A DNA stretch of 64,000 nucleotides from Thalia democratica (Eukaryota): positions 620,001-684,000 of the forward strand of contig OZ241834.1 in assembly GCA_965202585.1 (NCBI GenBank), in the 5' to 3' direction. The position numbers were made by a program, and so were the translations under genes. This document shows positions 27,701 to 64,000 of the stretch, piece after piece. The notes beneath the pieces were generated by a model. That model saw only the letters and a program-made list of their open reading frames with translations. It made no database searches and was not told the origin of the DNA. Each line of letters opens with the position of its first letter. The stretch's first letter is position 1.

Positions 27701-28602
27701 TTTAGGTTTGCTGTTTTTTTACCAACAATTGATTAAACTTGTAAGATTTGATTTAATCCATAGTTCGATTTTATTAGCAGCGCTTTTCCTCTATGATTAA
27801 TGAAATCCTTTACAATGTTCGTTAAAATTTACTAGGCCTGTCTATTCTTAATGTGCTTGGGGCTTATAATTTCATTGCTAGTCAATGCATTTAAACTTTT
27901 AATGTTTTATGAAATAGTCTGTATATCTTGATATTGTACGTTTGTAATTGTATCGATTATGCCTTGGCATTGCAATAAATGATAAAAAGATCTTAATTCA
28001 ACATATTTCATAGAATTGCAAACATTAAACTTAAATGCAGACATTATTAATGATGACAAATAATTGTATTATAACCGGACTAAAGCATTATATATTTTTT
28101 GTAAACAATTAAATATTTTGAAGGTTGATATCAAAAATTAATAAGTAGGTTGATGCCAAAGTCTTTGTTTGTTTTCACTTAATTAGATTTTAAAATGATT
28201 GAAGGCTGGTAAGAAGTTGATGCTAATAGAGGAAAAAGTAATACTTTAACGAATGATGAAAAGTCCTCCATAAGAATCTTCTTTACAACGTTGTTTCAAC
28301 TACTTTAGTAAAACTCTAATATGCGACACACTTGGTAATTTTTACTCAAGTGGCGCTTCTGCTAATAATCCTAATCAATCAAATTGACAACAAACATTTT
28401 AGATTTCGCTAATTTTCGAATATTCTAAATGCTTAAATATATTGCTATGAACCTAAAATTCTTAAACTACACGCGTACTGATCAGTATGTATTAGTACTT
28501 AAATTAAAGTGTACAACTCTAACAACAAATCGTATTCTCAATTAATAATAATATCTAGTTTAACCACTATTCTTTCTTTGTACATAAAGTATACTGTTTA
28601 TA

Positions 28603-39290: not shown

Positions 39291-39803
39291 ACTAAGGGCT
39301 TAAAAGGCAAACTATTAATTACACAAGTATTACCAGATTGTTAAATAATAAAGTAATAAGTAACGCTTGATTGTCTCCTTTATTATTTAATCAAGAAACT
39401 TTTATCTAAAAAGTATGTACGTATGAAATAAACAAATTTAAAGACACATCAATGGTATATTTATAATATTCAAAAATAAACGATTTTTTATAGAAAAACA
39501 GCTGAACTATTTTTAAAACAGTACTAAGCTTTAACACCATAAGTCTCTAACAAACGTCAAAAACGTTTATTTGAACTTTTTTAAAAAGAACTTTAAAACT
39601 TAGGATACAAAGAACTATTAACATTGAAAGTAATAATTGCTTTAGATCATATAAAAGGAGAGATTTTTCAGTAAACATTTCCTTTTTTTCAAAATTCGAA
39701 ACTATTAATAATAATTTATGATATTAAAGTAAATTTATTCTAAAGTTACTTTAAAAACATAAATTATTTTTTAATTAAAAAATCACGTAACTTAATTTTA
39801 ATA

Positions 39804-40643
39804 TCATAAAATGTGACTAAAGTATTTAGAAATATTGTTTGTGATTTATAAATGATCTCCATCGAGATAGTTTTCAAAAATGATTCGTCAAAGTTTAAAC
39901 ATCATTTCATGATTCTTTAAAGAGACCAAGCACCTGCCCAGTCTAGCGCGACTCCCATGAATTCTACATCCGTCGGTATGATGTAGTGTTTGCTTATCCA
40001 CTTGTTTACAAGTGGGATGTCGTATTTTCCACTTTGCCGTCGTTGAGGTTTTTGATAATTGAAATTATTGTCCATGGCTATTACTTGGAAATAATGTTGA
40101 TGATCCCAGTGTTGGGAAGCTGAAACACGAAATCAGGTTTTTTTTTTGTTGTGCACATGTTTTTACCTCAAGGTCGTCGTTTTTCCTATTTTTTCTTGCA
40201 GGGGTTTCTAGTAGGTTCCCTCGTGTTCTTAGTAGGGTTTGGTAGTGAAATGGTTTCATCCACCTTTGTGGGTTAAGGACCCATTTGCATATAGAAGATT
40301 TCCAATTGTGTCCATCGATCTATTCGAGGAACTCTTTTTTTTTGTCAAGCTACGTGGGCTTTTACGTGTGAGAATTTTATATTTAAGTTTTGTTTTATCT
40401 GATTGATTCGCATTAATAAATATATATAATTGATATAGTTCGGATGTTTCATCATATTTTTCGGCTCTTCACTTGAGCGCTCCGTCGTACGAGTTGTCAT
40501 CCTCGTCTTTGAATCGGAAGTACCTGTCCAATCTGCGACCAATATGTCATTCATGTTTGGAATGTCCAAATCTCCTTTTGCGACATAACTATTGATTAGG
40601 ATGTTGAAACAGTCGTGTGGTAGGCAAAGCCATTTCCGCACAT
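39804..40643 (-). mobile_element. 3' coding remnant of an R2-clade (restriction-like endonuclease) non-LTR retrotransposon
   Basis: Minus-strand translation across frameshifts, in R2 order: VRKWLCLPHDC...KGDLDIPNM; IGRRL; (W)QKKEFLE.IDG; CKWVLN...YQTLLRTRGNLLETPARKNR...KTC; KPDFV (40140); II..QVIAM...GKYD; ALDWAGAWSL; ISMEII...KYFSHIL* (stop at 39804). These parallel the R2Bm motifs WLRLPADVP, GGLAIP, W...SVDG, KPDII, IVDVQV, K..KY and SWRGVWSL (recalled, not aligned computationally). Confidence 0.85.
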
Positions 40644-43600
40644 ACTTGTTTGTAAATGCCCAAACCTCATTTTTCGACGGATACGTTGATTAGGATGTTG
40701 GGACAATCATGCGGTAGGCGAAGCTATTTCCGCACATACATGTTTGGAATGCCCAAACCTCCTTTTTCGACGGACCCGTTGATTAGGATGTTGGGACAAT
40801 CATGGGTAGGCGAAGCTATTTCCGCACATACTTGTTTGGAATGCCCAAACCTCCTTTTTCGACGGATACGTTGATTAGGATGTTGGGACAATCATGCGGT
40901 AGGCGAAGCTATTTCCGCACATACATGTTTGGAATGCCCAAACCTCCTTTTTCGACGAATACGTTGATTAGGATGTTGGGACAATCATGGGTAGGCGAAG
41001 CTATTTCCGCACATACTTGTTTGGAATGCCCAAACCTCCTTTTTCGACGGATACGTTGATTAGGATGTTGGGACAATCATGGGTAGGCGAAGCTATTTCC
41101 GCACATACTGGTTTGAAATTCCCAAACCTCCTTCTTCGACGAATACGTTGATTAGGATGTTGGGACAATCATGGGTAGGCGAAGCTATTTCCGCACATAC
41201 TTGTTTGGAATGCCAAAACCTCCTTTTTCGACGGATACGTTGATTAGGATGTTGGGACAATCATGGGTAGGCGAAGCTATTTCCGCACATACTTGTTTGG
41301 AATGCCCAAACCTCCTTTTTCGACGGACCCGTTGATTAGGATGTTGGGACAATCATGGGTAGGCGAAGCTATTTCCGCACATACTGGTTTGAAATTCCCA
41401 AACCTCCTTCTTCGACGAATACGTTGATTAGGATGTTGGGACAATCATGGGTAGGCGAAGCTATTTCCGCACATACTTGTTTGGAATGCCCAAACCTCCT
41501 TTTTCGACGGATACGTTGATTAGGATGTTGGGACAATCATGGGTAGGCGAAGCTATTTCCATACATACTGGTTTGAAATTCCCAAACCTCCTTCTTCGAC
41601 GAATACGTTGATTAGGATGTTGGGACAATCATGGGTAGGCGAAGCTATTTCCGCACATACTTGTTTGGAATGCCCAAACCTCCTTTTTCGACGGATACGT
41701 TGATTAGGATGTTGGGACAATCATGGGTAGACGAAGCTATTTCCGCACATACTGGTTTGGAATGCCGAAACCTCATTTTTCGACGGATACGTTGATTAGG
41801 ATGTTGGGACAATCATGCGGTAGGCGAAGCTATTTCCGCACATACTTGTTTGGAATGCCCAAACCTCCTTTTTCGACGGATACGTTGATTAGGATGTTGG
41901 GACAATCATGGGTAGGCGAAGCTATTTCCGCACATACTTGTTTGGAATGCCCAAACCTCCTTTTTCGACGGACCCGTTGATTAGAATGTTGGGACAATCA
42001 TGCGGTAGGCGAAGCTATTTCCGCACATACTTGTTTGGAATGCCCAAACCTCCTTTTTCGACGGACCCGTTGATTAGGATGTTGGGACAATCATGCGGTA
42101 GGCGAAGCTATTTCCGCACATACTTGTTTGGAATGCCCAACATCCTTTTTCGACGGACCCGTTGATTAGGATGTTGGGACAATCATGGGTAGGCAAAGCT
42201 ATTTCCGCACATACTTGTTTGGAATGCCCAAACCTCATTTTTCGACGGATACGTTGATTAGGATGTTGGGACAATCATGAGGTAGGCGAAGCTATTTCCG
42301 CACATACTTGTTTGGAATGCCCAAACCTCATTTTTCGACGGATACGTTGATTAGGATGTTGGGACAATCATGGGTAGGCGAAGCTATTTCCGCACATACT
42401 TGTTTGGAATGCCCAAACCTCATTTTTCGACGGATACGTTGATTAGGATGTTGGGACAATCATGGGTAGGCGAAGCTATTTCCGCACATACTTGTTTGGA
42501 ATGCCCAAACCTCCTTCTTCGACGAATACGTTGATTAGGATGTTGGGACAATCATGGGTAGGCGAAGCTATTTCCGCACATACTTGTTTGGAATGCCCAA
42601 ACCTCCTTTTTCGACGGACCCGTTGATTAGGATGTTGGGACAATCATGGGTAGGCAAAGCTATTTCCGCACATACTTGTTTGGAATGCCCAAACCTCATT
42701 TTTCGACGGATACGTTGATTAGGATGTTGGGACAATCATGAGGTAGGCGAAGCTATTTCCGCACATACTTGTTTGGAATGCCCAAACCTCATTTTTCGAC
42801 GGATACGTTGATTAGGATGTTGGGACAATCATGGGTAGGCGAAGCTATTTCCGCACATACTTGTTTGGAATGCCCAAACCTCATTTTTCGACGGATACGT
42901 TGATTAGGATGTTGGGACAATCATGGGTAGGCAAAGCTATTTCCGCACATACTGGTTTGAAATTCCCAAACCTCCTTCTTCGACGAATACGTTGATTAGG
43001 ATGTTGGGACAATCATGGGTAGGCGAAGCTATTTCCGCACATACTTGTTTGGAATGCCCAAACCTCAATTTTCGACGGATACGTTGATTAGGATGTTGGG
43101 ACAATCATGGGTAGGCGAAGCTATTTCCGCACATACTGGTTTGGAATGCCCAAACCTCCTTTTTCGACGAATACGTTGATTAGGATGTTGGGACAATCAT
43201 GGGTAGGCGAAGCTATTTCCGCACATACTTGTTTGGAATGCCCAAAACTCATTTTTCGACGGATACGTTGATTAGGATGTTGGGACAATCATGCGGTAGG
43301 CGAAGCTATTTCCGCACATACTGGTTTGAAATTCCCAAACCTCCTTCTTCGACGAATACGTTGATTAGGATGTTGGGACAATCATGGGTAGGCGAAGCTA
43401 TTTCCGCACATACTGGTTTGGAATGCCCAAACCTCCTTCTTCGACGAATACGTTGATTAGGATGTTTGGACAATCATGGGTAGGCGAAGCTATTTCCGCA
43501 CATACTGGTTTGGAATGCCCAAACCTCCTTTTTCGACGGACCCGTTGATTAGGATGTTGGGACAATCATGGGTAGGCGAAGCTATTTCCGCACATACTTG

Positions 43601-46600
43601 TTTGAAATTCCCAAAACTCATTTTTCGACGGATACGTTGATTAGGATGTTGGGACAATCATGCGGTAGGCGAAGCTATTTCCGCACATACTTGTTTGGAA
43701 TGCCCAAAACTCATTTTTCGACGGATACGTTGATTAGGATGTTCGGACAATCATGCGGTAGGCGAAGCTATTTCCGCACATACTGGTTTGAAATTCCCAA
43801 ACCTCCTTCTTCGACGAATACGTTGATTAGGATGTTGGGACAATCATGGGTAGGCGAAGCTATTTCCGCACATACTGGTTTGGAATGCCCAAACCTCCTT
43901 CTTCGACGAATACGTTGATTAGGATGTTTGGACAATCATGGGTAGGCGAAGCTATTTCCGCACATACTGGTTTGGAATGCCCAAACCTCCTTTTTCGACG
44001 GACCCGTTGATTAGGATGTTGGGACAATCATGGGTAGGCGAAGCTATTTCCGCACATACTTGTTTGGAATGCCCAAACCTCAATTTTCGACGGATACGTT
44101 GATTAGGATGTTGGGACAATCATGGGTAGGCGAAGCTATTTCCGCACATACTGGTTTGGAATGCCCAAACCTCCTTTTTCGACGAATACGTTGATTAGGA
44201 TGTTGGGACAATCATGGGTAGGCGAAGCTATTTCCGCACATACTTGTTTGGAATGCCCAAAACTCATTTTTCGACGGATACGTTGATTAGGATGTTGGGA
44301 CAATCATGCGGTAGGCGAAGCTATTTCCGCACATACTGGTTTGAAATTCCCAAACCTCCTTCTTCGACGAATACGTTGATTAGGATGTTGGGACAATCAT
44401 GGGTAGGCGAAGCTATTTCCGCACATACTGGTTTGGAATGCCCAAACCTCCTTCTTCGACGAATACGTTGATTAGGATGTTTGGACAATCATGGGTAGGC
44501 GAAGCTATTTCCGCACATACTGGTTTGGAATGCCCAAACCTCCTTTTTCGACGGACCCGTTGATTAGGATGTTGGGACAATCATGGGTAGGCGAAGCTAT
44601 TTCCGCACATACTTGTTTGGAATGCCCAAAACTCATTTTTCGACGGATACGTTGATTAGGATGTTGGGACAATCATGCGGTAGGCGAAGCTATTTCCGCA
44701 CATACTGGTTTGAAATTCCCAAACCTCCTTCTTCGACGAATACGTTGATTAGGATGTTGGGACAATCATGGGTAGGCGAAGCTATTTCCGCACATACTGG
44801 TTTGGAATGCCCAAACCTCCTTCTTCGACGAATACGTTGATTAGGATGTTTGGACAATCATGGGTAGGCGAAGCTATTTCCGCACATACTGGTTTGAAAT
44901 TCCCAAACCTCCTTCTTCGACGAATACGTTGATTAGGATGTTGGGACAATCATGGGTAGGCGAAGCTATTTCCGCACATACTTGTTTGGAATGCCCAAAA
45001 CTCATTTTTCGACGGATACGTTGATTAGGATGTTGGGACAATCATGCGGTAGGCGAAGCTATTTCCGCACATACTGGTTTGAAATTCCCAAACCTCCTTC
45101 TTCGACGAATACGTTGATTAGGATGTTGGGACAATCATGGGTAGGCGAAGCTATTTCCGCACATACTGGTTTGGAATGCCCAAACCTCCTTCTTCGACGA
45201 ATACGTTGATTAGGATGTTTGGACAATCATGGGTAGGCGAAGCTATTTCCGCACATACTGGTTTGGAATGCCCAAACCTCCTTTTTCGACGGACCCGTTG
45301 ATTAGGATGTTGGGACAATCATGGGTAGGCGAAGCTATTTCCGCACATACTGGTTTGAAATTCCCAAACCTCCTTCTTCGACGAATACGTTGATTAGGAT
45401 GTTTGGACAATCATGGGTAGGCGAAGCTATTTCCGCACATACTGGTTTGGAATGCCCAAACCTCCTTTTTCGACGGACCCGTTGATTAGGATGTTGGGAC
45501 AATCATGGGTAGGCGAAGCTATTTCCGCACATACTTGTTTGAAATTCCCAAACCTCCTTTTTCGACGAATACGTTGATTAGGATGTTGGGACAATCATGG
45601 GTAGGCGAAGCTATTTCCGCACATACTTGTTTGGAATGCCCAAACCACATTTTTCGACGGATACGTTGATTAGGATGTTGGGACAATCATGGGTAGGCGA
45701 AGCTATTTCCGCACATACTTGTTTGGAATGCCCAAACCTCATTTTTCGACGGATACGTTGATTAGGATGTTGGGACAATCATGGGTAGGCGAAGCTATTT
45801 CCGCACATACTTGTTTGGAATGCCCAAACCTCATTTTTCGACGGATACGTTGATTAGGATGTTGGGACAATCATGCGGTAGGCGAAGCTATTTCCGCACA
45901 TACTGGTTTGAAATTCCCAAACCTCCTTTTTCGACGAATACGTTGATTAGGATGTTGGGACAATCATGGGTAGGCGAAGCTATTTCCGCACATACTTGTT
46001 TGGAATGCCCAAACCTCCTTTTTCGACGGACACGTTGATTAGGATGTTGGGACAATCATGGGTAGGCGAAGCTATTTCCGCACATACTAGTTTGGAATGC
46101 CGAAACCTCATTTTTCGACGGACCCGTTGATTAGGATGTTGGGACAATCATGGGTAGGCGAAGCTATTTCCGCACATACTAGTTTGGAATGCCCAAACCT
46201 CATTTTTCGACGGACCCGTTGATTAGGATGTTGGGACAATCATGGGTAGGCGAAGCTATTTCCGCACATACTTGTTTGGAATGCCCAAACCTCCTTTTTC
46301 GACGGATACGTTGATTAGGATGTTGGGACAATCATGCGGTAGGCGAAGCTATTTCCGCACATACATGTTTGGAATTCCCAAACCTCCTTTTTCGACGGAT
46401 ACGTTGATTAGGATGTTGGGACAATCATGCGGTAGGCGAAGCTATTTCCGCACATACTGGTTTGAAATTCCCAAACCTCCTTCTTCGACGAATACGTTGA
46501 TTAGGATGTTGGGACAATCATGGGTAGGCGAAGCTATTTCCGCACATACTTGTTTGGAATGCCCAAACCTCCTTTTTCGACGGACCCGTTGATTAGGATG

Positions 46601-49600
46601 TTGGGACAATCATGGGTAGGCGAAGCTATTTCCGCACATACTTGTTTGGAATGCCCAAACCTCCTTTTTCGACGGACCCGTTGATTAGGATGTTGGGACA
46701 ATCATGCGGTAGGCGAAGCTATTTCCGCACATACATGTTTGGAATGCCCAAACCTCCTTTTTCGACGGACCCGTTGATTAGGATGTTGGGACAATCATGG
46801 GTAGGCAAAGCTATTTCCGCACATACTTGTTTGGAATACCCAAACCTCATTTTTCGACGAATACGTTGATTAGGATGTTGGGACAATCATGGGTAGGCGA
46901 AGCTATTTCCGCACATACATGTTTGGAATGCCCAAACCTCATTTTTCGACGAATACGTTGATTAGGATGTTGGGACAATCATGGGTAGGCGAAGCTATTT
47001 CTGCACATACTTGTTTGGAATGCCAAAACCTCCTTTTTCGACGGATACGTTGATTAGGATGTTGGGACAATCATGCGGTAGGCGAAGCTATTTCCGCACA
47101 TACTGGTTTGAAATTCCCAAACCTCCTTCTTCGACGAATACGTTGATTAGGATGTTGGGACAATCATGGGTAGGCGAAGCTATTTCCGCACATACTGGTT
47201 TGGAATGCCCAAACCTCCTTCTTCGACGAATACGTTGATTAGGATGTTTGGACAATCATGGGTAGGCGAAGCTATTTCCGCACATACTGGTTTGGAATGC
47301 CCAAACCTCCTTTTTCGACGGACCCGTTGATTAGGATGTTGGGACAATCATGGGTAGGCGAAGCTATTTCCGCACATACTTGTTTGGAATGCCCAAAACT
47401 CATTTTTCGACGGATACGTTGATTAGGATGTTGGGACAATCATGCGGTAGGCGAAGCTATTTCCGCACATACTGGTTTGAAATTCCCAAACCTCCTTCTT
47501 CGACGAATACGTTGATTAGGATGTTGGGACAATCATGGGTAGGCGAAGCTATTTCCGCACATACTGGTTTGGAATGCCCAAACCTCCTTCTTCGACGAAT
47601 ACGTTGATTAGGATGTTTGGACAATCATGGGTAGGCGAAGCTATTTCCGCACATACTGGTTTGAAATTCCCAAACCTCCTTCTTCGACGAATACGTTGAT
47701 TAGGATGTTGGGACAATCATGGGTAGGCGAAGCTATTTCCGCACATACTTGTTTGGAATGCCCAAAACTCATTTTTCGACGGATACGTTGATTAGGATGT
47801 TGGGACAATCATGCGGTAGGCGAAGCTATTTCCGCACATACTGGTTTGAAATTCCCAAACCTCCTTCTTCGACGAATACGTTGATTAGGATGTTGGGACA
47901 ATCATGGGTAGGCGAAGCTATTTCCGCACATACTGGTTTGGAATGCCCAAACCTCCTTCTTCGACGAATACGTTGATTAGGATGTTTGGACAATCATGGG
48001 TAGGCGAAGCTATTTCCGCACATACTGGTTTGGAATGCCCAAACCTCCTTTTTCGACGGACCCGTTGATTAGGATGTTGGGACAATCATGGGTAGGCGAA
48101 GCTATTTCCGCACATACTGGTTTGAAATTCCCAAACCTCCTTCTTCGACGAATACGTTGATTAGGATGTTTGGACAATCATGGGTAGGCGAAGCTATTTC
48201 CGCACATACTGGTTTGGAATGCCCAAACCTCCTTTTTCGACGGACCCGTTGATTAGGATGTTGGGACAATCATGGGTAGGCGAAGCTATTTCCGCACATA
48301 CTTGTTTGAAATTCCCAAACCTCCTTTTTCGACGAATACGTTGATTAGGATGTTGGGACAATCATGGGTAGGCGAAGCTATTTCCGCACATACTTGTTTG
48401 GAATGCCCAAACCACATTTTTCGACGGATACGTTGATTAGGATGTTGGGACAATCATGGGTAGGCGAAGCTATTTCCGCACATACTTGTTTGGAATGCCC
48501 AAACCTCATTTTTCGACGGATACGTTGATTAGGATGTTGGGACAATCATGGGTAGGCGAAGCTATTTCCGCACATACTTGTTTGGAATGCCCAAACCTCA
48601 TTTTTCGACGGATACGTTGATTAGGATGTTGGGACAATCATGCGGTAGGCGAAGCTATTTCCGCACATACTGGTTTGAAATTCCCAAACCTCCTTTTTCG
48701 ACGAATACGTTGATTAGGATGTTGGGACAATCATGGGTAGGCGAAGCTATTTCCGCACATACTTGTTTGGAATGCCCAAACCTCCTTTTTCGACGGACAC
48801 GTTGATTAGGATGTTGGGACAATCATGGGTAGGCGAAGCTATTTCCGCACATACTAGTTTGGAATGCCGAAACCTCATTTTTCGACGGACCCGTTGATTA
48901 GGATGTTGGGACAATCATGGGTAGGCGAAGCTATTTCCGCACATACTAGTTTGGAATGCCCAAACCTCATTTTTCGACGGACCCGTTGATTAGGATGTTG
49001 GGACAATCATGGGTAGGCGAAGCTATTTCCGCACATACTTGTTTGGAATGCCCAAACCTCCTTTTTCGACGGATACGTTGATTAGGATGTTGGGACAATC
49101 ATGCGGTAGGCGAAGCTATTTCCGCACATACATGTTTGGAATTCCCAAACCTCCTTTTTCGACGGATACGTTGATTAGGATGTTGGGACAATCATGCGGT
49201 AGGCGAAGCTATTTCCGCACATACTGGTTTGAAATTCCCAAACCTCCTTCTTCGACGAATACGTTGATTAGGATGTTGGGACAATCATGGGTAGGCGAAG
49301 CTATTTCCGCACATACTTGTTTGGAATGCCCAAACCTCCTTTTTCGACGGACCCGTTGATTAGGATGTTGGGACAATCATGGGTAGGCGAAGCTATTTCC
49401 GCACATACTTGTTTGGAATGCCCAAACCTCCTTTTTCGACGGACCCGTTGATTAGGATGTTGGGACAATCATGCGGTAGGCGAAGCTATTTCCGCACATA
49501 CATGTTTGGAATGCCCAAACCTCCTTTTTCGACGGACCCGTTGATTAGGATGTTGGGACAATCATGGGTAGGCAAAGCTATTTCCGCACATACTTGTTTG

Positions 49601-52600
49601 GAATACCCAAACCTCATTTTTCGACGAATACGTTGATTAGGATGTTGGGACAATCATGGGTAGGCGAAGCTATTTCCGCACATACATGTTTGGAATGCCC
49701 AAACCTCATTTTTCGACGAATACGTTGATTAGGATGTTGGGACAATCATGGGTAGGCGAAGCTATTTCTGCACATACTTGTTTGGAATGCCAAAACCTCC
49801 TTTTTCGACGGATACGTTGATTAGGATGTTGGGACAATCATGGGTAGGCGAAGCTATTTCCGCACATACTGGTTTGAAATTCCCAAACCTCATTTTTCGA
49901 CGGATACGTTGATTAGGATGTTGGGACAATCATGGGTAGGCGAAGCTATTTCCGCACATGCTTGTTTGGAATGCCCAAACCTCATTTTTCGACGGATACG
50001 TTGATTAGGATGTTGGGACAATCATGGGTAGGCGAAGCTATTTCCGCACATACATGTTTGGAATGCCCAAACCTCCTTTTTCGACGGATACGTTGATTAG
50101 GATGTTGGGACAATCATGGGTAGGCGAAGCTATTTCCGCACATACATGTTTGGAATGCCCAAACCTCCTTTTTCGACGGACCCGTTGATTAGGATGTTGG
50201 GACAATCATGCGGTAGGCAAAGCTATTTCCGCACATACTTGTTTGAAATTCCCAAACCTCCTTTTTCGACGAATACGTTGATTAGGATGTTGGGACAATC
50301 ATGGGTAGGCGAAGCTATTTCCGCACATACTTGTTTGGAATGCCGAAACCTCATTTTTCGACGGACCCGTTGATTAAAATGCTGAGACAATCATGCGGTA
50401 GGCGAAGCTATTTCCGCACATACTTGTTTGGAATGCCCAAACCTCGTTTTTCGACGGATACGTTGATTAGGATGTTGGGACAATCATGGGTAGGCGAAGC
50501 TATTTCCGCACATACTGGTTTGGAATGCCCAAACCTCCTTTTTCGACGGACCCGTTGATTAGGATGTTGAGACAATCATGGGTAGGCGAAGTTATTTCCG
50601 CACATACTTGTTTGGAATGCCCAAACCTCATTTTTCGACGGATACGTTGATTAGGATGTTGGGACAATCATGCGGTAGGCAAAGCTATTTCCGCACATAC
50701 TTGTTTGGAATGCCCAAACCTCGTTTTTCGACGGATACGTTGATTAGGATGTTGGGACAATCATGGGTAGGCGAAGCTATTTCCGCACATACTTGTTTGG
50801 AATGCCGAAACCTCATTTTTCGACGGACCCGTTGATTAGGATGTTGGGACAACCATGGGTAGGCGAAGCTATTTCCGCACATACTTGTTTGGAATGCCGA
50901 AACCTCATTTTTCGACGGACCCGTTGATTAGGATGTTGGGACTATCATGGGTAGGCGAAGCTATTTCCGCACATACTTGTTTGGAATGCCCAAACCTCGT
51001 TTTTCGACGGATACGTTGATTAGGATGTTGGGACAATCATGGGTAGACGAAGCTCTTTCCGCACATACTGGTTTGGAATGCCCAAACCTCCTTTTTCGAC
51101 GGACCCCTTGATTAGGATGTTGGGACAATCATGGGTAGGCGAAGCTATTTCCGCACATACTTGTTTGGAATGCCCAAACCTCATTTTTCGACGAACCCGT
51201 TGATTAGGATGTTGGGACAATCATGCGGTAGGCGAAGCTATTTCCGCACATACTTGTTTGGAATGCCGAAACCTCATTTTTCGACGGATACGTTGATTAG
51301 GATGTTGAGACAATCATGGGTAGGCGAAGCTATTTCCGCACATACTTGTTTGGAATGCCCAAACCTCATTTTTCGACGGATACGTTGATTAGGATGTTGG
51401 GACAATCATGCGGTAGGCAAAGCTATTTCCGCACATACTTGTTTGGAATGCCGAAACCTCATTTTTCGACGGACCCGTTGATTAGGATGTTGGGACAAAC
51501 ATGGGTAGGCGAAGCTATTTCCGCAAATACTTGTTTGGAATGCCGAAACCTCATTTTTCGACGAATACGTTGATTAGGATGTTGGGACAATCATGAGGTA
51601 GGCAAAGCTATTTCCGCACAAACTTGTTTGGAATGCCCAAACCTCATTTTTCGACGGATACGTTGATTAGGATGTTGAGACAATCATGGGTAGGCGAAGC
51701 TATTTCCGAACATACTTGTTTGGAATGCCGAAACCTCATTTTTCGACGGACCCGTTGATTAGGATGTTGGGACAATCATGGGTAGGCGAAGCTATTTCCG
51801 CACATACTGGTTTGGAATGCCCAAACCTCATTTTTCGACGGATACGTTGATTAGGATGTTGGGACAATCATGCGGTAGGCGAAGCTATTTCCGCACATAC
51901 ATGTTAGGAATGCCCAAACCTCCTTCTTCGACGAATACGTTGATTAGGATGTTGGGACAATCATGGGTAGGCAAAGCTATTTCCGCACATACTTGTTTGG
52001 AATGCCTAAACCTCATTTTTCGACGGACACGTTGATTAAAATGTTGGGACAATCATGCGGTAGGCAAAGCTATTTCCGCACATACTTGTTTGGAATGCCC
52101 AAACCTCATTTTTCGACGAATACGTTGATTAGGATGTTGGGACAATCATGGGTAGGCGAAGCTATTTCCGCACATACTTGTTTGGAATGCCGAAACCTCA
52201 TTTTTCGACGGATACGTTGATTAGGATGTTGGGACAATCATGGGTAGGCGAAGCTATTTCCGCACATACTTGTTTGGAATGCCCAAACCTCATTTTTCGA
52301 CGGATACGTTGATTAGGATGTTGGGACAATCATGGGTAGGCGAAGCTATTTCCGCACATACTTGTTTGGAATGCCCAAACCTCCTTTTTCGACGGATACG
52401 TTGATTAGGATGTTGGGACAATCATGCGGTAGGCGAAGCTATTTCCGCACATACTTGTTTGGAATGCCGAAACCTCATTTTTCGACGGATACGTTGATTA
52501 GGATGTTGGGACAATCATGCGGTAGGCGAAGCTATTTCCGCACATACTTGTTTGTAAATGCCCAAACCTCATTTTTCGACGGATACGTTGATTAGGATGT

Positions 52601-55600
52601 TGGGACAATCATGCGGTAGGCGAAGCTATTTCCGCACATACATGTTAGGAATGCCCAAACCTCCTTCTTCGACGAATACGTTGATTAGGATGTTGGGACA
52701 ATCATGGGTAGGCGAAGCTATTTCCGCACATACTTGTTTGGAATGCCCAAACCTCCTTTTTCGACGGATACGTTGATTAGGATGTTGGGACAATCATGGG
52801 TAGGCGAAGCTATTTCCGCACATACTGGTTTGAAATTCCCAAACCTCCTTCTTCGACGAATACGTTGATTAGGATGTTGGGACAATCATGGGTAGGCGAA
52901 GCTATTTCCGCACATACTTGTTTGGAATGCCAAAACCTCCTTTTTCGACGGATACGTTGATTAGGATGTTGGGACAATCATGGGTAGGCGAAGCTATTTC
53001 CGCACATACTTGTTTGGAATGCCCAAACCTCCTTTTTCGACGGACCCGTTGATTAGGATGTTGGGACAATCATGGGTAGGCGAAGCTATTTCCGCACATA
53101 CTGGTTTGAAATTCCCAAACCTCCTTCTTCGACGAATACGTTGATTAGGATGTTGGGACAATCATGGGTAGGCGAAGCTATTTCCGCACATACTTGTTTG
53201 GAATGCCCAAACCTCCTTTTTCGACGGATACGTTGATTAGGATGTTGGGACAATCATGGGTAGGCGAAGCTATTTCCATACATACTGGTTTGAAATTCCC
53301 AAACCTCCTTCTTCGACGAATACGTTGATTAGGATGTTGGGACAATCATGGGTAGGCGAAGCTATTTCCGCACATACTTGTTTGGAATGCCCAAACCTCC
53401 TTTTTCGACGGATACGTTGATTAGGATGTTGGGACAATCATGGGTAGACGAAGCTATTTCCGCACATACTGGTTTGGAATGCCGAAACCTCATTTTTCGA
53501 CGGATACGTTGATTAGGATGTTGGGACAATCATGCGGTAGGCGAAGCTATTTCCGCACATACTTGTTTGGAATGCCCAAACCTCCTTTTTCGACGGATAC
53601 GTTGATTAGGATGTTGGGACAATCATGGGTAGGCGAAGCTATTTCCGCACATACTTGTTTGGAATGCCCAAACCTCCTTTTTCGACGGACCCGTTGATTA
53701 GGATGTTGGGACAATCATGCGGTAGGCGAAGCTATTTCCGCACATACTTGTTTGGAATGCCCAAACCTCCTTTTTCGACGGATACGTTGATTAGGATGTT
53801 GAGACAATCATGAGGTAGGCGAAGCTATTTCCGCACATACTTGTTTGGAATGCCCAAACCTCATTTTTCGACGGATACGTTGATTAGGATGTTGGGACAA
53901 TCATGAGGTAGGCGAAGCTATTTCCGCACATACTTGTTTGGAATGCCCAAACCTCATTTTTCGACGGATACGTTGATTAGGATGTTGGGACAATCATGGG
54001 TAGGCGAAGCTATTTCCGCACATACTTGTTTGGAATGCCCAAACCTCATTTTTCGACGGATACGTTGATTAGGATGTTGGGACAATCATGGGTAGGCGAA
54101 GCTATTTCCGCACATACTTGTTTGGAATGCCCAAACCTCCTTCTTCGACGAATACGTTGATTAGGATGTTGGGACAATCATGGGTAGGCGAAGCTATTTC
54201 CGCACATACTTGTTTGGAATGCCCAAACCTCCTTTTTCGACGGACCCGTTGATTAGGATGTTGGGACAATCATGGGTAGGCGAAGCTATTTCCGCACATA
54301 CTGGTTTGGAATGCCCAAACCTCCTTTTTCGACGGACCCGTTGATTAGGATGTTGGGACAATCATGAGGTAGGCGAAGCTATTTCCGCACATACTTGTTT
54401 GGAATGCCCAAACCTCATTTTTCGACGGATACGTTGATTAGGATGTTGGGACAATCATGGGTAGGCGAAGCTATTTCCGCACATACTTGTTTGGAATGCC
54501 CAAACCTCATTTTTCGACGGATACGTTGATTAGGATGTTGGGACAATCATGGGTAGGCAAAGCTATTTCCGCACATACTGGTTTGAAATTCCCAAACCTC
54601 CTTCTTCGACGAATACGTTGATTAGGATGTTGGGACAATCATGGGTAGGCGAAGCTATTTCCGCACATACTTGTTTGGAATGCCCAAACCTCAATTTTCG
54701 ACGGATACGTTGATTAGGATGTTGGGACAATCATGGGTAGGCGAAGCTATTTCCGCACATACTGGTTTGGAATGCCCAAACCTCCTTTTTCGACGAATAC
54801 GTTGATTAGGATGTTGGGACAATCATGGGTAGGCGAAGCTATTTCCGCACATACTTGTTTGGAATGCCCAAAACTCATTTTTCGACGGATACGTTGATTA
54901 GGATGTTGGGACAATCATGCGGTAGGCGAAGCTATTTCCGCACATACTGGTTTGAAATTCCCAAACCTCCTTCTTCGACGAATACGTTGATTAGGATGTT
55001 GGGACAATCATGGGTAGGCGAAGCTATTTCCGCACATACTGGTTTGGAATGCCCAAACCTCCTTCTTCGACGAATACGTTGATTAGGATGTTTGGACAAT
55101 CATGGGTAGGCGAAGCTATTTCCGCACATACTGGTTTGGAATGCCCAAACCTCCTTTTTCGACGGACCCGTTGATTAGGATGTTGGGACAATCATGGGTA
55201 GGCGAAGCTATTTCCGCACATACTTGTTTGAAATTCCCAAACCTCCTTCTTCGACGAATACGTTGATTAGGATGTTGGGACAATCATGGGTAGGCGAAGC
55301 TATTTCCGCACATACTGGTTTGGAATGCCCAAACCTCCTTCTTCGACGAATACGTTGATTAGGATGTTGGGACAATCATGGGTAGGCGAAGCTATTTCCG
55401 CACATACTGGTTTGGAATGCCCAAACCTCCTTTTTCGACGGACCCGTTGATTAGGATGTTGGGACAATCATGGGTAGGCGAAGCTATTTCCGCACATACT
55501 GGTTTGAAATTCCCAAACCTCCTTCTTCGACGAATACGTTGATTAGGATGTTTGGACATTCATGGGTAGGCGAAGCTATTTCCGCACATACTGGTTTGGA

Positions 55601-58600
55601 ATGCCCAAACCTCCTTTTTCGACGGACCCGTTGATTAGGATGTTGGGACAATCATGGGTAGGCGAAGCTATTTCCGCACATACTTGTTTGAAATTCCCAA
55701 ACCTCCTTTTTCGACGAATACGTTGATTAGGATGTTGGGACAATCATGGGTAGGCGAAGCTATTTCCGCACATACTTGTTTGGAATGCCCAAACCACATT
55801 TTTCGACGGATACGTTGATTAGGATGTTGGGACAATCATGGGTAGGCGAAGCTATTTCCGCACATACTTGTTTGGAATGCCCAAACCTCATTTTTCGACG
55901 GATACGTTGATTAGGATGTTGGGACAATCATGGGTAGGCGAAGCTATTTCCGCACATACTTGTTTGGAATGCCCAAACCTCATTTTTCGACGGATACGTT
56001 GATTAGGATGTTGGGACAATCATGCGGTAGGCGAAGCTATTTCCGCACATACTGGTTTGAAATTCCCAAACCTCCTTTTTCGACGAATACGTTGATTAGG
56101 ATGTTGGGACAATCATGGGTAGGCGAAGCTATTTCCGCACATACTTGTTTGGAATGCCCAAACCTCCTTTTTCGACGGACACGTTGATTAGGATGTTGGG
56201 ACAATCATGGGTAGGCGAAGCTATTTCCGCACATACTAGTTTGGAATGCCGAAACCTCATTTTTCGACGGACCCGTTGATTAGGATGTTGGGACAATCAT
56301 GGGTAGGCGAAGCTATTTCCGCACATACTAGTTTGGAATGCCCAAACCTCATTTTTCGACGGACCCGTTGATTAGGATGTTGGGACAATCATGGGTAGGC
56401 GAAGCTATTTCCGCACATACTTGTTTGGAATGCCCAAACCTCCTTTTTCGACGGATACGTTGATTAGGATGTTGGGACAATCATGCGGTAGGCGAAGCTA
56501 TTTCCGCACATACATGTTTGGAATTCCCAAACCTCCTTTTTCGACGGATACGTTGATTAGGATGTTGAGACAATCATGCGGTAGGCGAAGCTATTTCCGC
56601 ACATACTGGTTTGAAATTCCCAAACCTCCTTCTTCGACGAATACGTTGATTAGGATGTTGGGACAATCATGGGTAGGCGAAGCTATTTCCGCACATACTT
56701 GTTTGGAATGCCCAAACCTCCTTTTTCGACGGACCCGTTGATTAGGATGTTGGGACAATCATGGGTAGGCGAAGCTATTTCCGCACATCCTTGTTTGGAA
56801 TGCCCAAACCTCCTTTTTCGACGGATCCGTTGATTAGGATGTTGGGACAATCATGCGGTAGGCGAAGCTATTTCCGCACATACTTGTTTGGAATGCCCAA
56901 ACCTCCTTTTTCGACGGACCCGTTGATTAGGATGTTGGGACAATCATGGGTAGGCAAAGCTATTTCCGCACATACTTGTTTGGAATACCCAAACCTCATT
57001 TTTCGACGAATACGTTGATTAGGATGTTGGGACAATCATGGGTAGGCGAAGCTATTTCCGCACATACATGTTTGGAATGCCCAAACCTCATTTTTCGACG
57101 AATACGTTGATTAGGATGTTGGGACAATCATGGGTAGGCGAAGCTATTTCCGCACATACTTGTTTGGAATGCCAAAACCTCCTTTTTCGACGGATACGTT
57201 GATTAGGATGTTGGGACAATCATGGGTAGGCGAAGCTATTTCCGCACATACTGGTTTGAAATTCCCAAACCTCATTTTTCGACGGATACGTTGATTAGGA
57301 TGTTGGGACAATCATGGGTAGGCGAAGCTATTTCCGCACATGCTTGTTTGGAATGCCCAAACCTCATTTTTCGACGGATACGTTGATTAGGATGTTGGGA
57401 CAATCATGGGTAGGCGAAGCTATTTCCGCACATACATGTTTGGAATGCCCAAACCTCCTTTTTCGACGGATACGTTGATTAGGATGTTGGGACAATCATG
57501 GGTAGGCGAAGCTATTTCCGCACATACATGTTTGGAATGCCCAAACCTCCTTTTTCGACGGACCCGTTGATTAGGATGTTGGGACAATCATGCGGTAGGC
57601 AAAGCTATTTCCGCACATACTTGTTTGAAATTCCCAAACCTCCTTTTTCGACGAATACGTTGATTAGGATGTTGGGACAATCATGGGTAGGCGAAGCTAT
57701 TTCCGCACATACTTGTTTGGAATGCCCAAACCTCATTTTTCGACGGACCCGTTGATTAAAATGCTGAGACAATCATGCGGTAGGCGAAGCTATTTCCGCA
57801 CATACTTGTTTGGAATGCCCAAACCTCGTTTTTCGACGGATACGTTGATTAGGATGTTGGGACAATCATGGGTAGGCGAAGCTATTTCCGCACATACTGG
57901 TTTGGAATGCCCAAACCTCCTTTTTCGACGGACCCGTTGATTAGGATGTTGAGACAATCATGGGTAGGCGAAGTTATTTCCGCACATACTTGTTTGGAAT
58001 GCCCAAACCTCATTTTTCGACGGATACGTTGATTAGGATGTTGGGACAATCATGCGGTAGGCAAAGCTATTTCCGCACATACTTGTTTGGAATGCCCAAA
58101 CCTCGTTTTTCGACGGATACGTTGATTAGGATGTTGGGACAATCATGGGTAGGCGAAGCTATTTCCGCACATACTTGTTTGGAATGCCGAAACCTCATTT
58201 TTCGACGGACCCGTTGATTAGGATGTTGGGACAACCATGGGTAGGCGAAGCTATTTCCGCACATACTTGTTTGGAATGCCGAAACCTCATTTTTCGACGG
58301 ACCCGTTGATTAGGATGTTGGGACTATCATGGGTAGGCAAAGCTATTTCCGCACATACTTGTTTGGAATGCCCAAACCTCGTTTTTCGACGGATACGTTG
58401 ATTAGGATGTTGGGACAATCATGGGTAGACGAAGCTCTTTCCGCACATACTGGTTTGGAATGCCCAAACCTCCTTTTTCGACGGACCCCTTGATTAGGAT
58501 GTTGGGACAATCATGGGTAGGCGAAGCTATTTCCGCACATACTTGTTTGGAATGCCCAAACCTCATTTTTCGACGAACCCGTTGATTAGGATGTTGGGAC

Positions 58601-61600
58601 AATCATGCGGTAGGCGAAGCTATTTCCGCACATACATGTTTGGAATGCCCAAACCTCCTTCTTCGACGGATACGTTGATTAGGATGTTGGGACAATCATG
58701 GGTAGGCGAAGCTATTTCCGCACATACTTGTTTGGAATGCCCAAACCTCATTTTTCGACGGATACGTTGATTAGGATGTTGGGACAATCATGGGTAGGCG
58801 AAGCTATTTCCGCACATACTTGTTTGGAATGCCGAAACCTCATTTTTCGACGGATACGTTGATTAGGATGTTGAGACAATCATGGGTAGGCGAAGCTATT
58901 TCCGCACATACTTGTTTGGAATGCCCAAACCTCATTTTTCGACGGATACGTTGATTAGGATGTTGGGACAATCATGCGGTAGGCAAAGCTATTTCCGCAC
59001 ATACTTGTTTGGAATGCCGAAACCTCATTTTTCGACGGACCCGTTGATTAGGATGTTGGGACAAACATGGGTAGGCGAAGCTATTTCCGCAAATACTTGT
59101 TTGGAATGCCGAAACCTCATTTTTCGACGAATACGTTGATTAGGATGTTGGGACAATCATGAGGTAGGCAAAGCTATTTCCGCACAAACTTGTTTGGAAT
59201 GCCCAAACCTCATTTTTCGACGGATACGTTGATTAGGATGTTGAGACAATCATGGGTAGGCGAAGCTATTTCCGAACATACTTGTTTGGAATGCCGAAAC
59301 CTCATTTTTCGACGGACCCGTTGATTAGGATGTTGGGACAATCATGGGTAGGCGAAGCTATTTCCGCACATACTGGTTTGGAATGCCCAAACCTCATTTT
59401 TCGACGGATACGTTGATTAGGATGTTGGGACAATCATGCGGTAGGCGAAGCTATTTCCGCACATACATGTTAGGAATGCCCAAACCTCCTTCTTCGACGA
59501 ATACGTTGATTAGGATGTTGGGACAATCATGGGTAGGCAAAGCTATTTCCGCACATACTTGTTTGGAATGCTTAAACCTCATTTTTCGACGGACACGTTG
59601 ATTAAAATGTTGGGACAATCATGCGGTAGGCAAAGCTATTTCCGCACATACTTGTTTGGAATGCCCAAACCTCATTTTTCGACGAATACGTTGATTAGGA
59701 TGTTGGGACAATCATGGGTAGGCGAAGCTATTTCCGCACATACTTGTTTGGAATGCCGAAACCTCATTTTTCGACGGATACGTTGATTAGGATGTTGGGA
59801 CAATCATGGGTAGGCGAAGCTATTTCCGCACATACTTGTTTGGAATGCCCAAACCTCATTTTTCGACGGATACGTTGATTAGGATGTTGGGACAATCATG
59901 GGTAGGCGAAGCTATTTCCGCACATACTTGTTTGGAATGCCCAAACCTCCTTTTTCGACGGATACGTTGATTAGGATGTTGGGACAATCATGCGGTAGGC
60001 GAAGCTATTTCCGCACATACTTGTTTGGAATGCCGAAACCTCATTTTTCGACGGATACGTTGATTAGGATGTTGGGACAATCATGGGTAGGCGAAGCTAT
60101 TTCCGCACATACTTGTTTGGAATGCCCAAACCTCATTTTTCGACGGATACGTTGATTAGGATGTTGGGACAATCATGCGGTAGGCGAAGCTATTTCCGCA
60201 CATACTTGTTTGTAAATGCCCAAACCTCATTTTTCGACGGATACGTTGATTAGGATGTTGGGACAATCATGCGGTAGGCGAAGCTATTTCCGCACATACA
60301 TGTTAGGAATGCCCAAACCTCCTTCTTCGACGAATACGTTGATTAGGATGTTGGGACAATCATGGGTAGGCGAAGCTATTTCCGCACATACTTGTTTGGA
60401 ATGCCCAAACCTCCTTTTTCGACGAATACGTTGATTAGGATGTTGGGACAATCATGGGTAGGCGAAGCTATTTCCGCACATACTTGTTTGGAATGCCCAA
60501 ACCTCCTTTTTCGACGAATACGTTGATTAAAATGTTGAGACAATCATGGGTAGGCGAAGCTATTTCCGCACATACTGGTTTGGAATGCCCAAACCTCATT
60601 TTTCGACGGATACGTTGATTAGGATGTTGGGACAATCATGCGGTAGGCGAAGCTATTTCCGCACATACATGTTTGGAATGCCCAAACCTCATTTTTCGAC
60701 GAATACGTTGATTAGGATGTTGGGACAATCATGGGTAGGCGAAGCTATTTCCGCACATACATGTTTGGAATGCCCAAACCTCATTTTTCGACGGACCCGT
60801 TGATTAGGATGTTGGGACAATCATGGGTAGGCGAAGCTATTTCCATACATACTGGTTTGGAATGCCCAAACCTCCTTTTTCGACGGATACGTTGATTAGG
60901 ATGTTGGGACAATCATGGGTAGGCGAAGCTATTTCCGCACATACTGGTTAGGAATGCCCAAACCTCCTTCTTCGACGAATACGTTGATTAGGATGTTGGG
61001 ACAATCATGGGTAGGCAAAGCTATTTCCGCACATACTTGTTTGGAATGCCGAAACCTCATTTTTCGACGAATACGTTGATTAGGATGTTGAGACAATCAT
61101 GCGGTAGGCAAAGCTATTTCCGCACATACTTGTTTGGAATGCCCAAACCTCCTTTTTCGACGGATACGTTGATTAGGATGTTGGGACAATCATGGGTAGG
61201 CGAAGCTATTTCCGCACATACTTGTTTGGAATGCCGAAACCTCATTTTTCGACGGACCCGTTGATTAGGATGTTGGGACAATCATGGGTAGGCGAAGCTA
61301 TTTACGCACATACTTGTTTGGAATGCCCAAACCTCCTTTTTCGACGAATACGTTGATTAGGATGTTGGGACAATCATGGGTAGGCGAAGCTATTTCCGCA
61401 CATACTTGTTTGGAATTCCCAAACCTCCTTTTTCGACGAACCCGTTGATTAGGATGTTGAGACAATCATGCGGTAGGCGAAGCTATTTCCGCACATACTT
61501 GTTTGGAATGCCCAAACCTCATTTTTCGACGGACCCGTTGATTAGGATGTTGAGACAATCATGGGTAGGCGAAGCTATTTCCGCACATACTTGTTTGGAA

Positions 61601-64000
61601 TGCCCAAACCTCCTTTTTCGACGAATACGTTGATTAGGATGTTGGGACAATCATGGGTAGGCGAAGCTATTTCCGCACATACTTGTTTGGAATGCCCAAA
61701 CCTCATTTTTCGACGGATACGTTGATTAGGATGTTGGGACAATCATGCGGTAGGCAAAGCTATTTCCGCACATACTTGTTTGGAATGCCCAAACCTCCTT
61801 TTTCGACGAATACGTTGATTAGGATGTTGGGACAATCATGGGTAGGCGAAGCTATTTCCGCACATACTGGTTTGGAATGCCGAAACCTCCTTTTTCGACG
61901 AATACGTTGATTAGGATGTTGGGACAATCATGGGTAGGCGAAGCTATTTCCGCACATACTGGTTTGAAATTCCCAAACCTCCTTCTTCGACGAATACGTT
62001 GATTAGGATGTTGGGACAATCATGGGTAGGCGAAGCTATTTCCGCACATACTTGTTTGGAATGCCGAAACCTCATTTTTCGACGGACCCGTTGATTAGGA
62101 TGTTGGGACAATCATGGGTAGGCGAAGCTATTTCCGCACATACTTGTTTGGAATGCCGAAACCTCATTTTTCGACGGACCCGTTGATTAGGATGTTGGGA
62201 CAATCATGGGTAGGCGAAGCTATTTCCGCACATACTTGTTTGGAATGCCCAAACCTCCTTCTTCGACGAATACGTTGATTAGGATGTTGGGACAATCATG
62301 CGGTAGGCGAAGCTATTTCCGCACATACTTGTTTGAAATTCCCAAACCTCCTTTTTCGACGAATACGTTGATTAGGATGTTGGGACAATCATGGGTAGGC
62401 GAAGCTATTTCCGCACATACTTGTTTGGAATGCCCAAACCTCATTTTTCGACGGACCCGTTGATTAAAATGCTGAGACAATCATGCGGTAGGCGAAGCTA
62501 TTTCCGCACATACTGGTTTGGAATGCCCAAACCTCCTTTTTCGACGAACCTGTTGATTAGGATGTTGGGACAATCATGGGTAGGCGAAGCTATTTCCGTA
62601 CATACTTGTTTGGAATGCCCAAACCTCATTTTTCGACGGATACGTTGATTAGGATGTTGGGACAATCATGGGTAGGCGAAGCTATTTCCGCACATACTTG
62701 TTTGGAATGCCCAAACCTCCTTTTTCGACGAATACGTTGATTAGGATGTTGAGACAATCATGCGGTAGGCGAAGCTATTTCCGCACATACTTGTTTGGAA
62801 TGCCCAAACCTCCTTTTTCGACGGATACGTTGATTAGGATGTTGGGACAATCATGGGTAGGCGAAGCTATTTCCGCACATACTTGTTTGGAATACCGAAA
62901 CCTCATTTTTCGACGGACCCGTTGATTAGGATGTTGGGACAATCATGGGTAGGCGAAGCTATTTCCGCACATACTTGTTTGGAATGCCCAAACCTCATTT
63001 TTCGACGGACCCGTTGATTAGGATGTTGGGACAATCATGGGTAGGCGAAGCTATTTCCGCACATACTTGTTTGGAATGCCCAAACCTCCTTTTTCGACGA
63101 ATACGTTGATTAGGATGTTGGGACAATCATGCGGTAGGCGAAGCTATTTCCGCACATACTTGTTTGGAATGCCCAAACCTCCTTTTTCGACGAATACGTT
63201 GATTAGGATGTTTGGACAATCATGGGTAGGCGAAGCTATTTCCGCACATACTGGTTTGGAATGCCCAAACCTCCTTTTTCGACGGACCCGTTGATTAGGA
63301 TGTTGGGACAATCATGGGTAGGCGAAGCTATTTCCGCACATACTGGTTTGGAATGCCCAAAACTCCTTTTTCGACGGATACGTTGATTAGGATGTTGGGA
63401 CAATCATGCGGTAGGCGAAGCTATTTCCGCACATACTTGTTTGGAATGCCCAAACCTCCTTTTTCGACGAACCCGTTGATTAGGATGTTGAGACAATCAT
63501 GGGTAGGCGAAGCTATTTCCGCACATACTTGTTTGGAATGCCGAAACCTCATTTTTCGACGGACCCGTTGATTAGGATGTTGGGACAATCATGGGTAGGC
63601 GAAGCTATTTCCGAACATACTTGTTTGGAATGCCCAAACCTCATTTTTCGACGGATACGTTGATTAGGATGTTGAGACAATCATGCGGTAGGCGAAGCTA
63701 TTTCCGCACATACTTGTTTGGAATGCCGAAACCTCCTTTTTCGACGAATACGTTGATTAGGATGTTGGGACAATCATGCGGTAGGCGAAGCTATTTCCGC
63801 ACATACTTGTTTGGAATGCCGAAACCTCATTTTTCAACGGACCCGTTGATTAGGATGTTGGGACAATCATGGGTAGGCGAAGCTATTTCCGAACATACTT
63901 GTTTGGAATGCCCAAACCTCATTTTTCGACGGATACGTTGATTAGGATGTTGAGACAATCATGCGGTAGGCGAAGCTATTTCCGCACATACTTGTTTGGA
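40551..64000. repeat. Satellite array of 92/93-bp monomers, ~250 copies, continuing past the window end
   Basis: Consensus CTTGTTTGGAATGCCCAAACCTC(C/A)TTTTTCGACGGATACGTTGATTAGGATGTTGGGACAATCATG(C)GGTAGGCGAAGCTATTTCCGCACATA, head to tail with only point variants and a 1-bp indel. The first monomer (40551-40643) is diverged (15/93 mismatches by hand count). Confidence 0.98.

Follow-up and report, generated by a model that had tools for sequence, protein, structure and literature searches.

We describe a satellite array, and its probable source, in a 64,000-nucleotide stretch of DNA from Thalia democratica (contig OZ241834.1 of assembly GCA_965202585.1, forward-strand positions 620,001 to 684,000; this whole stretch is hereafter the window, and its first letter is position 1). 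The array is built from a 92–93 bp monomer that is a piece of the coding region of an R2-type element, a retrotransposon that lacks long terminal repeats (non-LTR), of the kind that carries a restriction-like endonuclease (RLE). Read along the minus strand, the array passes in phase to a single diverged copy of its own unit, and from there into the decayed remains of an open reading frame (ORF) of the same retrotransposon family. Probably, an R2-type element lay on the minus strand at this locus, and tandem duplication of a segment of its ORF gave rise to the satellite.

Tandem Repeats Finder, which was used to delimit the array, reports a tandem repeat at 40554–64000 with a period of 92, 254 copies, 94% matches and no indels. 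A preliminary description of the window, made from its letters, had proposed a long homogenised array amplified at least 250-fold, and the copy number agrees with this. The array reaches the end of the window at position 64000 and runs off it, giving a length of at least 23.4 kb. Monomer spacing was measured with a conserved 17-mer as anchor: units follow one another at 92 bp (184 cases), 93 bp (65), 94 bp (3) or 91 bp (1). Since every spacing falls between 91 and 94 bp, the array is uninterrupted over its 23.4 kb. There are no N bases in the window. The array also stands out by its composition, with a GC content of 45% against 21–31% in the remainder of the window.

Periods of 277 and 369 bp score equally with that of 92 bp, and the array therefore contains higher-order repeats of three and four monomers. 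The 99 distinct monomer sequences occur in ordered patterns (for example, C-D-A-E). Comparison of monomer labels revealed block duplications: a stretch of 29 successive monomers recurs without any difference 30 monomers (2767 bp) onward, and shorter identical runs are found 80 and 110 monomers apart. Comparing the array with itself by gapless autocorrelation or by BLAST gave no information, since the phase drifts between 92 and 93 bp. The mean pairwise difference among monomers is 5.3%, with no gradient toward the array edge. In all of this the array behaves as an ordinary satellite, evolving by unequal exchange and block duplication, and it has the hallmarks of satellite DNA: (i) a long, uninterrupted head-to-tail arrangement, (ii) near-identical monomers and (iii) concerted evolution. 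A special hairpin or dyad within the monomer was considered and rejected (a dimer folded as DNA gives z = -0.23). The monomer was absent from JGI metagenome contigs scanned with its 24-nucleotide core.

In the codon register of the preliminary description, the 93-bp units translate as YVRK*LRLPHDCPNILINVSVEKGGLGIPNK and close variants of it, the exact peptide being found in six monomers only. The stop is TAG at the fifth codon, formerly a Trp codon, and is present in 249 of the 253 units. A second stop, TGA, occurs in 39 of the 65 units of 93 bp. The description of the monomer as exactly 31 codons long is correct for these 65 units (about a quarter of the array) and incorrect for the dominant 92-bp form (184 units), which lacks one base (CCTACC-CATG versus CCTACCGCATG). 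The copy at the array's inner edge, described below, is 93 bp long and has a base at the position deleted in the 92-bp monomers; because it keeps that base, 93 bp is taken to be the ancestral length, and the deletion to have spread through most of the array. With a period of mostly 92 bp, the array keeps no reading frame and encodes nothing: it is non-coding. Mechanically predicted ORFs of 54–116 amino acids (aa) on either strand of the array yielded no relatives, and the 54-aa one had no database record. Given that an 85-aa satellite ORF lacks relatives and the 54-aa ORF lacks a record, the satellite is not traceable to other assemblies. Counted over all 253 units, TGA stands at a GGA (Gly) codon in 106, and is widespread through the array in the same way as the 1-bp deletion. 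These two changes are possible markers for reconstructing the order of homogenisation events.

The final array unit (minus strand, 40740–40647) is followed in unbroken phase by one further unit at 40646–40554, which we call the junction copy. Read in codon register, the junction copy gives YVRKWLCLPHDCFNILINSYVAKGDLDIPNM, with TGG (Trp) where the array has its stop. That the array passes without a break into this sequence had been noted in the preliminary description and is borne out here. At 16 of its 93 positions the junction copy departs from the array consensus, and its average difference from the individual monomers is 18.7%.

The identity of the unit emerged from relatives found in marine metagenomes. 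A HMMER pass with a 99-aa piece that begins in the junction copy (40644–40348) through 1.84 billion representative proteins returned a sole match, a marine-metagenome protein of 172 aa (P0001; 44% identity, E = 9e-7). The cluster of this protein and a follow-up search led to six Tara Oceans or marine metagenome contigs, L001–L006; no further relatives came to light in IMG/VR or, with a thumb profile as query, in the JGI metagenome contigs. In these contigs the gene order is an RVT_1 ORF (the reverse transcriptase, RT), then an ORF for the thumb domain that contains the unit once (...FNKYVRKWLRLPHDCPNILINGPIAKGGLGIQNMHEN...), then a 192-aa ORF with CPSCKDKVANLNHIIAEC (a CCHC motif), RTIRHD, KLEPQ, KKPDIIFQ and VVIMD; after one frameshift past the 192-aa ORF the sequence continues as ...RRKDKKYNIP...MGVALDWTGAWS...FDESFLEVISMETIYKS.... 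RVT_1 lies directly upstream of the thumb in L002–L006. The array monomers match the relatives' thumb with 76–79% aa identity over 34 aa (tblastn, E = 1e-14), and at the DNA level are 75–79% identical to L001 and L005. The monomer is thus homologous to an internal coding segment, and this segment is single-copy in all six of these less decayed family members; no tandem repeat of the unit was found in L005. The relatives' elements have a GC content of 40–49% between flanks of 18–34%, the same contrast as in the window, and the 45% of the satellite matches that of their coding regions.

The six contigs have features of their own. All six copies are decayed, with frameshifts and stops, and 5'-truncated or decayed at the 5' end. 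L001–L004 break off directly after ...RHENNFTVL into AT-rich DNA, L005 carries two or more additional pieces of family members inside a span of 7 kb, and the host is an AT-rich (18–34% GC) planktonic eukaryote. L005 (ERZ907857 k127_1208258) also holds, at 1328–3110, a second and different R2-like element with a 461-aa RVT_1 ORF and a thumb ORF. This second element is joined after its own GGLGI codons, at AAC-A, to mid-RT of the stub-related family, as either a template-switch chimera or a nested insertion with deletion; the breakpoint lies a few codons from the border of the satellite unit.

In R2Bm, the RT is followed by an alpha-helical thumb (which includes L732/K733), a linker (R901/D902), a CCHC zinc finger and the RLE (D996, D1009, K1026) (PMC10499050). 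The endonuclease motif series of R2 is RH, E, PD, D/E, K..KY and RG.W, which in domain numbering places D39, D/E52 and K69..K72Y73 (PMC4838377). Past the junction copy, the minus strand carries about 0.8 kb of a decayed ORF, which we mapped by tblastn of the marine relatives' ORFs on the window (Table 1); homology ends at about 39830, close to the 39804 given earlier. P0001 and its fuller copies, L005 and L006, are colinear with the whole of this stub, from the thumb to the C-terminal tail. The tblastn matches are four, colinear and all on the minus strand: (i) thumb and linker, window 40668–40429 against L006:629–904, at 41% identity (E = 2e-14); (ii) the linker to the first Cys, 40355–40134 against residues 3–85 of L006:871–1446, at 41% over 83 aa (E = 1e-14); (iii) the KKPD piece, 40143–40015, at 48% over 48 aa to the relative's KKPDIIFQIPN... 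(E = 5e-6); and (iv) K..KY to the C-terminal tail, 40057–39830, at 55% over 78 aa to L005:4355–4726 (E = 7e-26). The thumb and linker piece also matches P0001 by BLASTP (E = 3e-15 and 2e-8), and the DNA of this remnant is 71–74% identical to L001 and L005. About 53 codons, corresponding to the relative's residues 86–138, have been lost between the second and third matches; they include two residues of the CCHC motif (His and the last Cys), the RH motif and the beta-1 Glu.

Table 1. Features of the satellite locus and its immediate flank, in window coordinates.
Feature	Position	Strand	Details
Homogenised satellite array	40647..64000	-	253 full monomers and one partial monomer at the window edge
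Junction copy, one unhomogenised 93-bp unit of parental type	40554..40646	-	codon register 40644-40552
Remnant of the end of the thumb and the start of the linker	40429..40553	-	two frames (GRRLDRYFRF..., then ...KNMMKHPNY); at least two frameshifts
Linker/pre-CCHC remnant (...HYQTLLRTRGNLLETPARKNRK...C)	40134..40355	-	two in-frame stops; a single Cys of CCHC left
Deletion point	40134..40143	-	two high-scoring segment pairs (residues 3-85 and 139-186 of the 192-aa ORF) abut or overlap, in different frames
Remnant of the first half of the RLE, KKPDFVFQLPN...	40015..40143	-	two stops
Remnant of the second half of the RLE and the C-terminal tail	39830..40057	-	with stops; (Q)SGKY for K..KY, DWAGAWS for RG.W, then FDESFLKTISMEIIYKS
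AT-rich unique spacer, stub to 3.6-kb triplication	39279..39829	.	no homology to relatives; no 3' untranslated region (UTR) or target site

The stub is thoroughly degraded. Stop-free pieces of 25–114 aa lie in three minus-strand frames downstream of the junction, and to read the stub as one protein, several stops must be passed and the frame changed at least four times. The stub breaks off about 46 codons ahead of the relative's stop, with no recognisable 3' UTR; because of this truncation, the original 3' junction of the element is lost. GC content is 32–47% down to about 39900 (with a dip to 26% near 40400) and 11–23% below about 39880. The IDG, KPD, KY and WAGAWSL motifs reported in the preliminary description are present, but spread over three frames separated by stops. 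Of the proposed succession of a CCHC motif and a PD-(D/E)xK endonuclease, the endonuclease survives in degenerate form (third and fourth matches above), while the CCHC zinc knuckle is mostly deleted and keeps one Cys. The degenerate RLE motifs (KKPD, VIAMD, Q..KY and AG.W, for the series PD-(D/E)-K..KY-RG.W) stand in R2 order, and the spacing from KPD to KY is about 38 aa in the window versus 35 in R2Bm (numbering of PMC4838377). A colinear set of [KR]PD..KY..G.W was obtained in 1 of 5000 dinucleotide shuffles and in none of 280 background segments taken from the window; the test was devised with the data already seen and is supportive only.

By sequence comparison, the parent element is placed in the R2 superfamily. 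When the RT ORF of the relatives is searched against PDB, R2 proteins are the best matches (E = 9e-20 to 2e-17), followed by a LINE-1-type RT (7e-13), LINE-1 ORF2p (about 1e-12) and then group II intron RTs. P0001 matches R2 proteins only (E = 2e-9 to 4e-8), and it is through P0001 that the thumb block WL-LP-D-P ... GGLGIP is homologous to R2. The unit itself aligns to ...VGQWLRLPADVPKAYYHAAVQDGGLAIPSV of R2Bm, at about residues 773–803 (counted from the printed alignment). The relatives' 192-aa ORF likewise matches R2 proteins only (E = 6e-10 to 4e-7), through the CCHC, RH and KPDLIF, and the CCHC piece of L001 aligns to that of R2Tg (E = 0.025–0.04); the C-terminal half of the relatives' protein, searched alone, had no match in PDB. 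These alignments identify the monomer as a fragment of the thumb-coding block that follows the RT in an R2-type RLE element. The earlier proposal of such an origin, with the rest of the ORF still attached, is upheld by way of the marine relatives and the colinear tblastn matches.

The relatives also permit the history of the unit to be followed. The 93 sites were polarised with L001 as outgroup: 59 are invariant, at 16 the junction copy and the array agree against the outgroup, 10 changes are private to the junction copy, 7 are fixed in the array, and at 1 site all three differ. Four ancestral residues, Arg, Pro, Gly and Gly (of WLRLP, DCPNIL and GGLG), survive in the array and are replaced by Cys, Phe, Asp and Asp in the junction copy; Trp, Ala and Met survive in the junction copy and have given way to a stop, Glu and Lys in the array. 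From these site patterns, the junction copy and the array would be two lineages from one intact sequence of this genome's own family. In nucleotides the array consensus is the closer of the two to the marine relative (69 versus 66 of 93), and in amino acids the junction copy reaches about 74% (a hand count over the 31-aa unit) against the 76–79% of the monomers.

A hint of how the first duplication may have arisen comes from the unit's borders. The relatives share a short direct repeat between the sequence ahead of the unit (CTATTCAACAAA / TACGTG) and the unit's end (GGCATTCAAAACATG / CAC), which in the nearest relatives is ATTCAA-ACA-like. The joint between monomers in the array, CATTCCAAACAAG / TATGTG, resembles the unit end fused to the pre-unit sequence, upstream Asn-Lys-Tyr codons included; it looks like what a microhomology-mediated first duplication would leave behind.

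The sequence of events that we propose is as follows. A copy of an R2-superfamily non-LTR retrotransposon (an RLE-bearing long interspersed nuclear element, or LINE) would have occupied the minus strand of this locus. Within its ORF a 93-bp segment, the thumb block YVRKWL-LPHDCPNILIN...KGGLGIPN, would then have been duplicated in tandem by slippage or unequal exchange at the border microhomology, the simplest founding event given that the unit ends share a short direct repeat in the nearest relatives. Repeated unequal exchange and conversion would have expanded and homogenised the repeat to at least 254 copies, and the change of Trp to stop and, in most monomers, the 1-bp deletion (93 to 92 bp) would have been fixed along the way. 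The outermost copy would have escaped homogenisation and, like the 3' remainder of the ORF, fallen into decay, that remainder accumulating frameshifts and stops and losing about 53 codons of the CCHC/RH region. Origin in place is the simplest reading of the in-phase junction and the colinear ORF, with which it is consistent, although unproven.

Several observations weigh against this account. The assignment to R2 is transitive: the stop-free pieces of the window give noise only against PDB and Pfam, the endonuclease-like piece has no word-sharing homologue, and the core R2 claim therefore holds only through an intermediate. The homology of monomer and stub to RLE proteins anticipated in the preliminary description accordingly fails in direct searches and appears through the P0001 family. 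Its term "R2-clade" is justified at the level of the superfamily, since the relatives match R2 only or best; PDB holds no NeSL, R4, HERO or Utopia proteins, and the matches therefore speak for the superfamily and not for the clade in the strict sense. R2 sensu stricto is marked by its insertion into the 28S rRNA gene, or into some other defined and repeated target. No such setting is seen here, and within positions 1–41000 of the window there is no rRNA, tRNA or other Rfam family, and hence no rDNA target, nor any RT-like sequence. With no RNA gene nearby and a truncated 3' end, the element cannot be called site-specific, as it had been. The far end of the array lies beyond the window, where the expected 5' half of the element is out of sight. 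The upstream microhomology is read from marine relatives whose DNA is only 71–79% identical, and not from this genome. Finally, the step in divergence is abrupt: the 18.7% junction copy lies directly beside monomers that differ by about 5%, with no gradient.

Such a step would equally fit the later joining of an existing satellite to the stub. In that scenario, a different copy of the element family, lying elsewhere or active earlier, gave rise to the satellite, which was later joined to the stub at the homologous 93-bp segment, either through homologous recombination or because a circular fragment of the array reintegrated there. Besides the sharp step, this would account for the complete absence from the array (0 of 253 monomers) of 12 of the 16 states specific to the junction copy, TGG among them, and for an array consensus that is nearer the marine relative than the junction copy is. 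We nevertheless consider it unlikely: an in-phase join at the homologous unit, continued by a colinear ORF, is what origin in place predicts with no extra event; the 16 states common to junction copy and array against the outgroup place both in this genome's own lineage; and no hybrid monomer is visible at the boundary.

The founding copies might also have been made by the element itself, its RT jumping back between AACA-type microhomologies of the thumb-coding RNA during target-primed reverse transcription, so that the seed was born at insertion and expanded afterwards by recombination. The unit borders do fall within short direct repeats, and the L005 chimera at AAC-A shows a typical template-switching pattern a few codons from the unit border. 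Were this true, a conserved R2-type coding motif would be a recurrent breakpoint able to spawn tandem repeats. This route seems to us distinctly improbable, as it leans on one coincidence, slippage at the DNA level accounts for this border too, and the join in L005 may instead reflect nesting of one element in another followed by a deletion, or chimeric assembly (the 5' continuation in L006 differs). Least probable of all, and very unlikely, is that the junction at about 40.6 kb, or the length of the array, is an artefact of assembly. Long satellite arrays are difficult to assemble, and identical multi-kb blocks such as the run of 29 monomers could be either real duplications or assembly stutter; yet a chance mis-join would not place a thumb-derived satellite in phase beside the homologous codons of the stub, and the array is made up of 99 distinct monomer variants in ordered higher-order patterns. 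Duplication within an element at this locus remains our preferred explanation of the satellite.

Satellites from transposon coding regions have been described before. In a 2022 review of transposon-derived tandem repeats, sources in terminal inverted repeats (TIRs), LTRs and UTRs predominate, and ORF-derived cases are fewer; these include chicken HinfI from CR1 ORF2, Phodopus PROsat and harbour-seal Pvc20 from LINE-1 ORF2, rye E3900 and an Aegilops microsatellite from gag, and Chenopodium CficCl-61-40 from a CACTA transposase (PMC9659126). The suggestion that a coding-motif satellite is unusual is accordingly sound as to frequency, while the kind as such is already on record. Our satellite resembles HinfI, PROsat, Pvc20 and CficCl-61-40 in having a monomer from a transposon coding region. 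Unlike those ORF-derived satellites, it comes from an R2-type (RLE) source, its unit is a lone thumb motif, short and conserved, and the parent ORF, though decayed, still adjoins the array in phase. A limited literature search, with partial coverage, found no R2-derived satellite and no 92-bp satellite.

Two further systems invite comparison. Satellites related to Ogre LTR retrotransposons in Lathyrus and pea derive from a hypervariable 3' untranslated region that is prone to tandem repeats, and spread with the element (PMC7004042). As here, a short retroelement repeat has become long homogenised arrays, and few-copy parents can still be found. Unlike the Ogre case, the source here is a conserved coding block, single-copy in six relatives. 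In Drosophila heterochromatin, tandem arrays of R1/R2-type elements occur, and LINEs of the rDNA type add to tandem repeats outside the rDNA. Whole elements or large parts of them are repeated in those arrays, whereas the repeat described here is a 93-bp internal coding fragment. Compared with R2Bm, R2Tg and other solved R2 proteins, the parent family aligns colinearly through RT, thumb, CCHC and the first half of the RLE. The window copy departs from them in having no RT or N-terminal domains in view, many stops and a position away from rDNA, in the loss of most of the CCHC and the RH motif, and in reading Q..KY for K..KY and AG.W for RG.W.

The locus is therefore a clear but not unprecedented case of a transposon gene fragment turned satellite, and involves no new element or mechanism. 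With it, an R2-type element joins the few transposons whose coding sequence has yielded satellites. The source of most satellites is untraceable; here a single locus displays the segment of origin with its reading frame, the likely breakpoints and an unhomogenised parental copy. This permits direct tests of satellite birth, by microhomology slippage versus template jumping, and reveals changes fixed during homogenisation, namely the stop codon and, in most monomers, the 1-bp deletion.

The rest of the window holds other repeats. An exact tandem triplication of a 3.6-kb AT-rich unit occupies 28566–39278, with borders at about 28566, 32074, 35683 and 39279; its copies are 95–98% identical, contain no RNA gene and no convincing ORF, and end 550 bp from the stub. 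The end of this repeat (39278) was considered as the target site of the element and rejected, because the left and right ends of the triplication have the same phase and 39278 is the mere end of the triplication. The triplication as a mark of the target site is also unsupported, the 550 bp up to the stub having no homology to the relatives. Farther away, an inverted duplication (17810–19191 and 22225–23592) has a core of 796 nucleotides at 96%; each arm holds one ORF (287 aa on the minus strand, 234 aa on the plus strand) of coiled-coil-like appearance, for which neither a Pfam match above threshold nor an identical entry in the searched protein collection was found. A second pair of inverted arms, of about 1 kb each (8023–9056 and 10961–11766), is 73–89% complementary and consists partly of 17–18-bp subrepeats (GTCACTTTTGCACGAAGC); the arms enclose about 2 kb with no long ORF, and together have the look of a foldback-type or long-TIR non-autonomous element.

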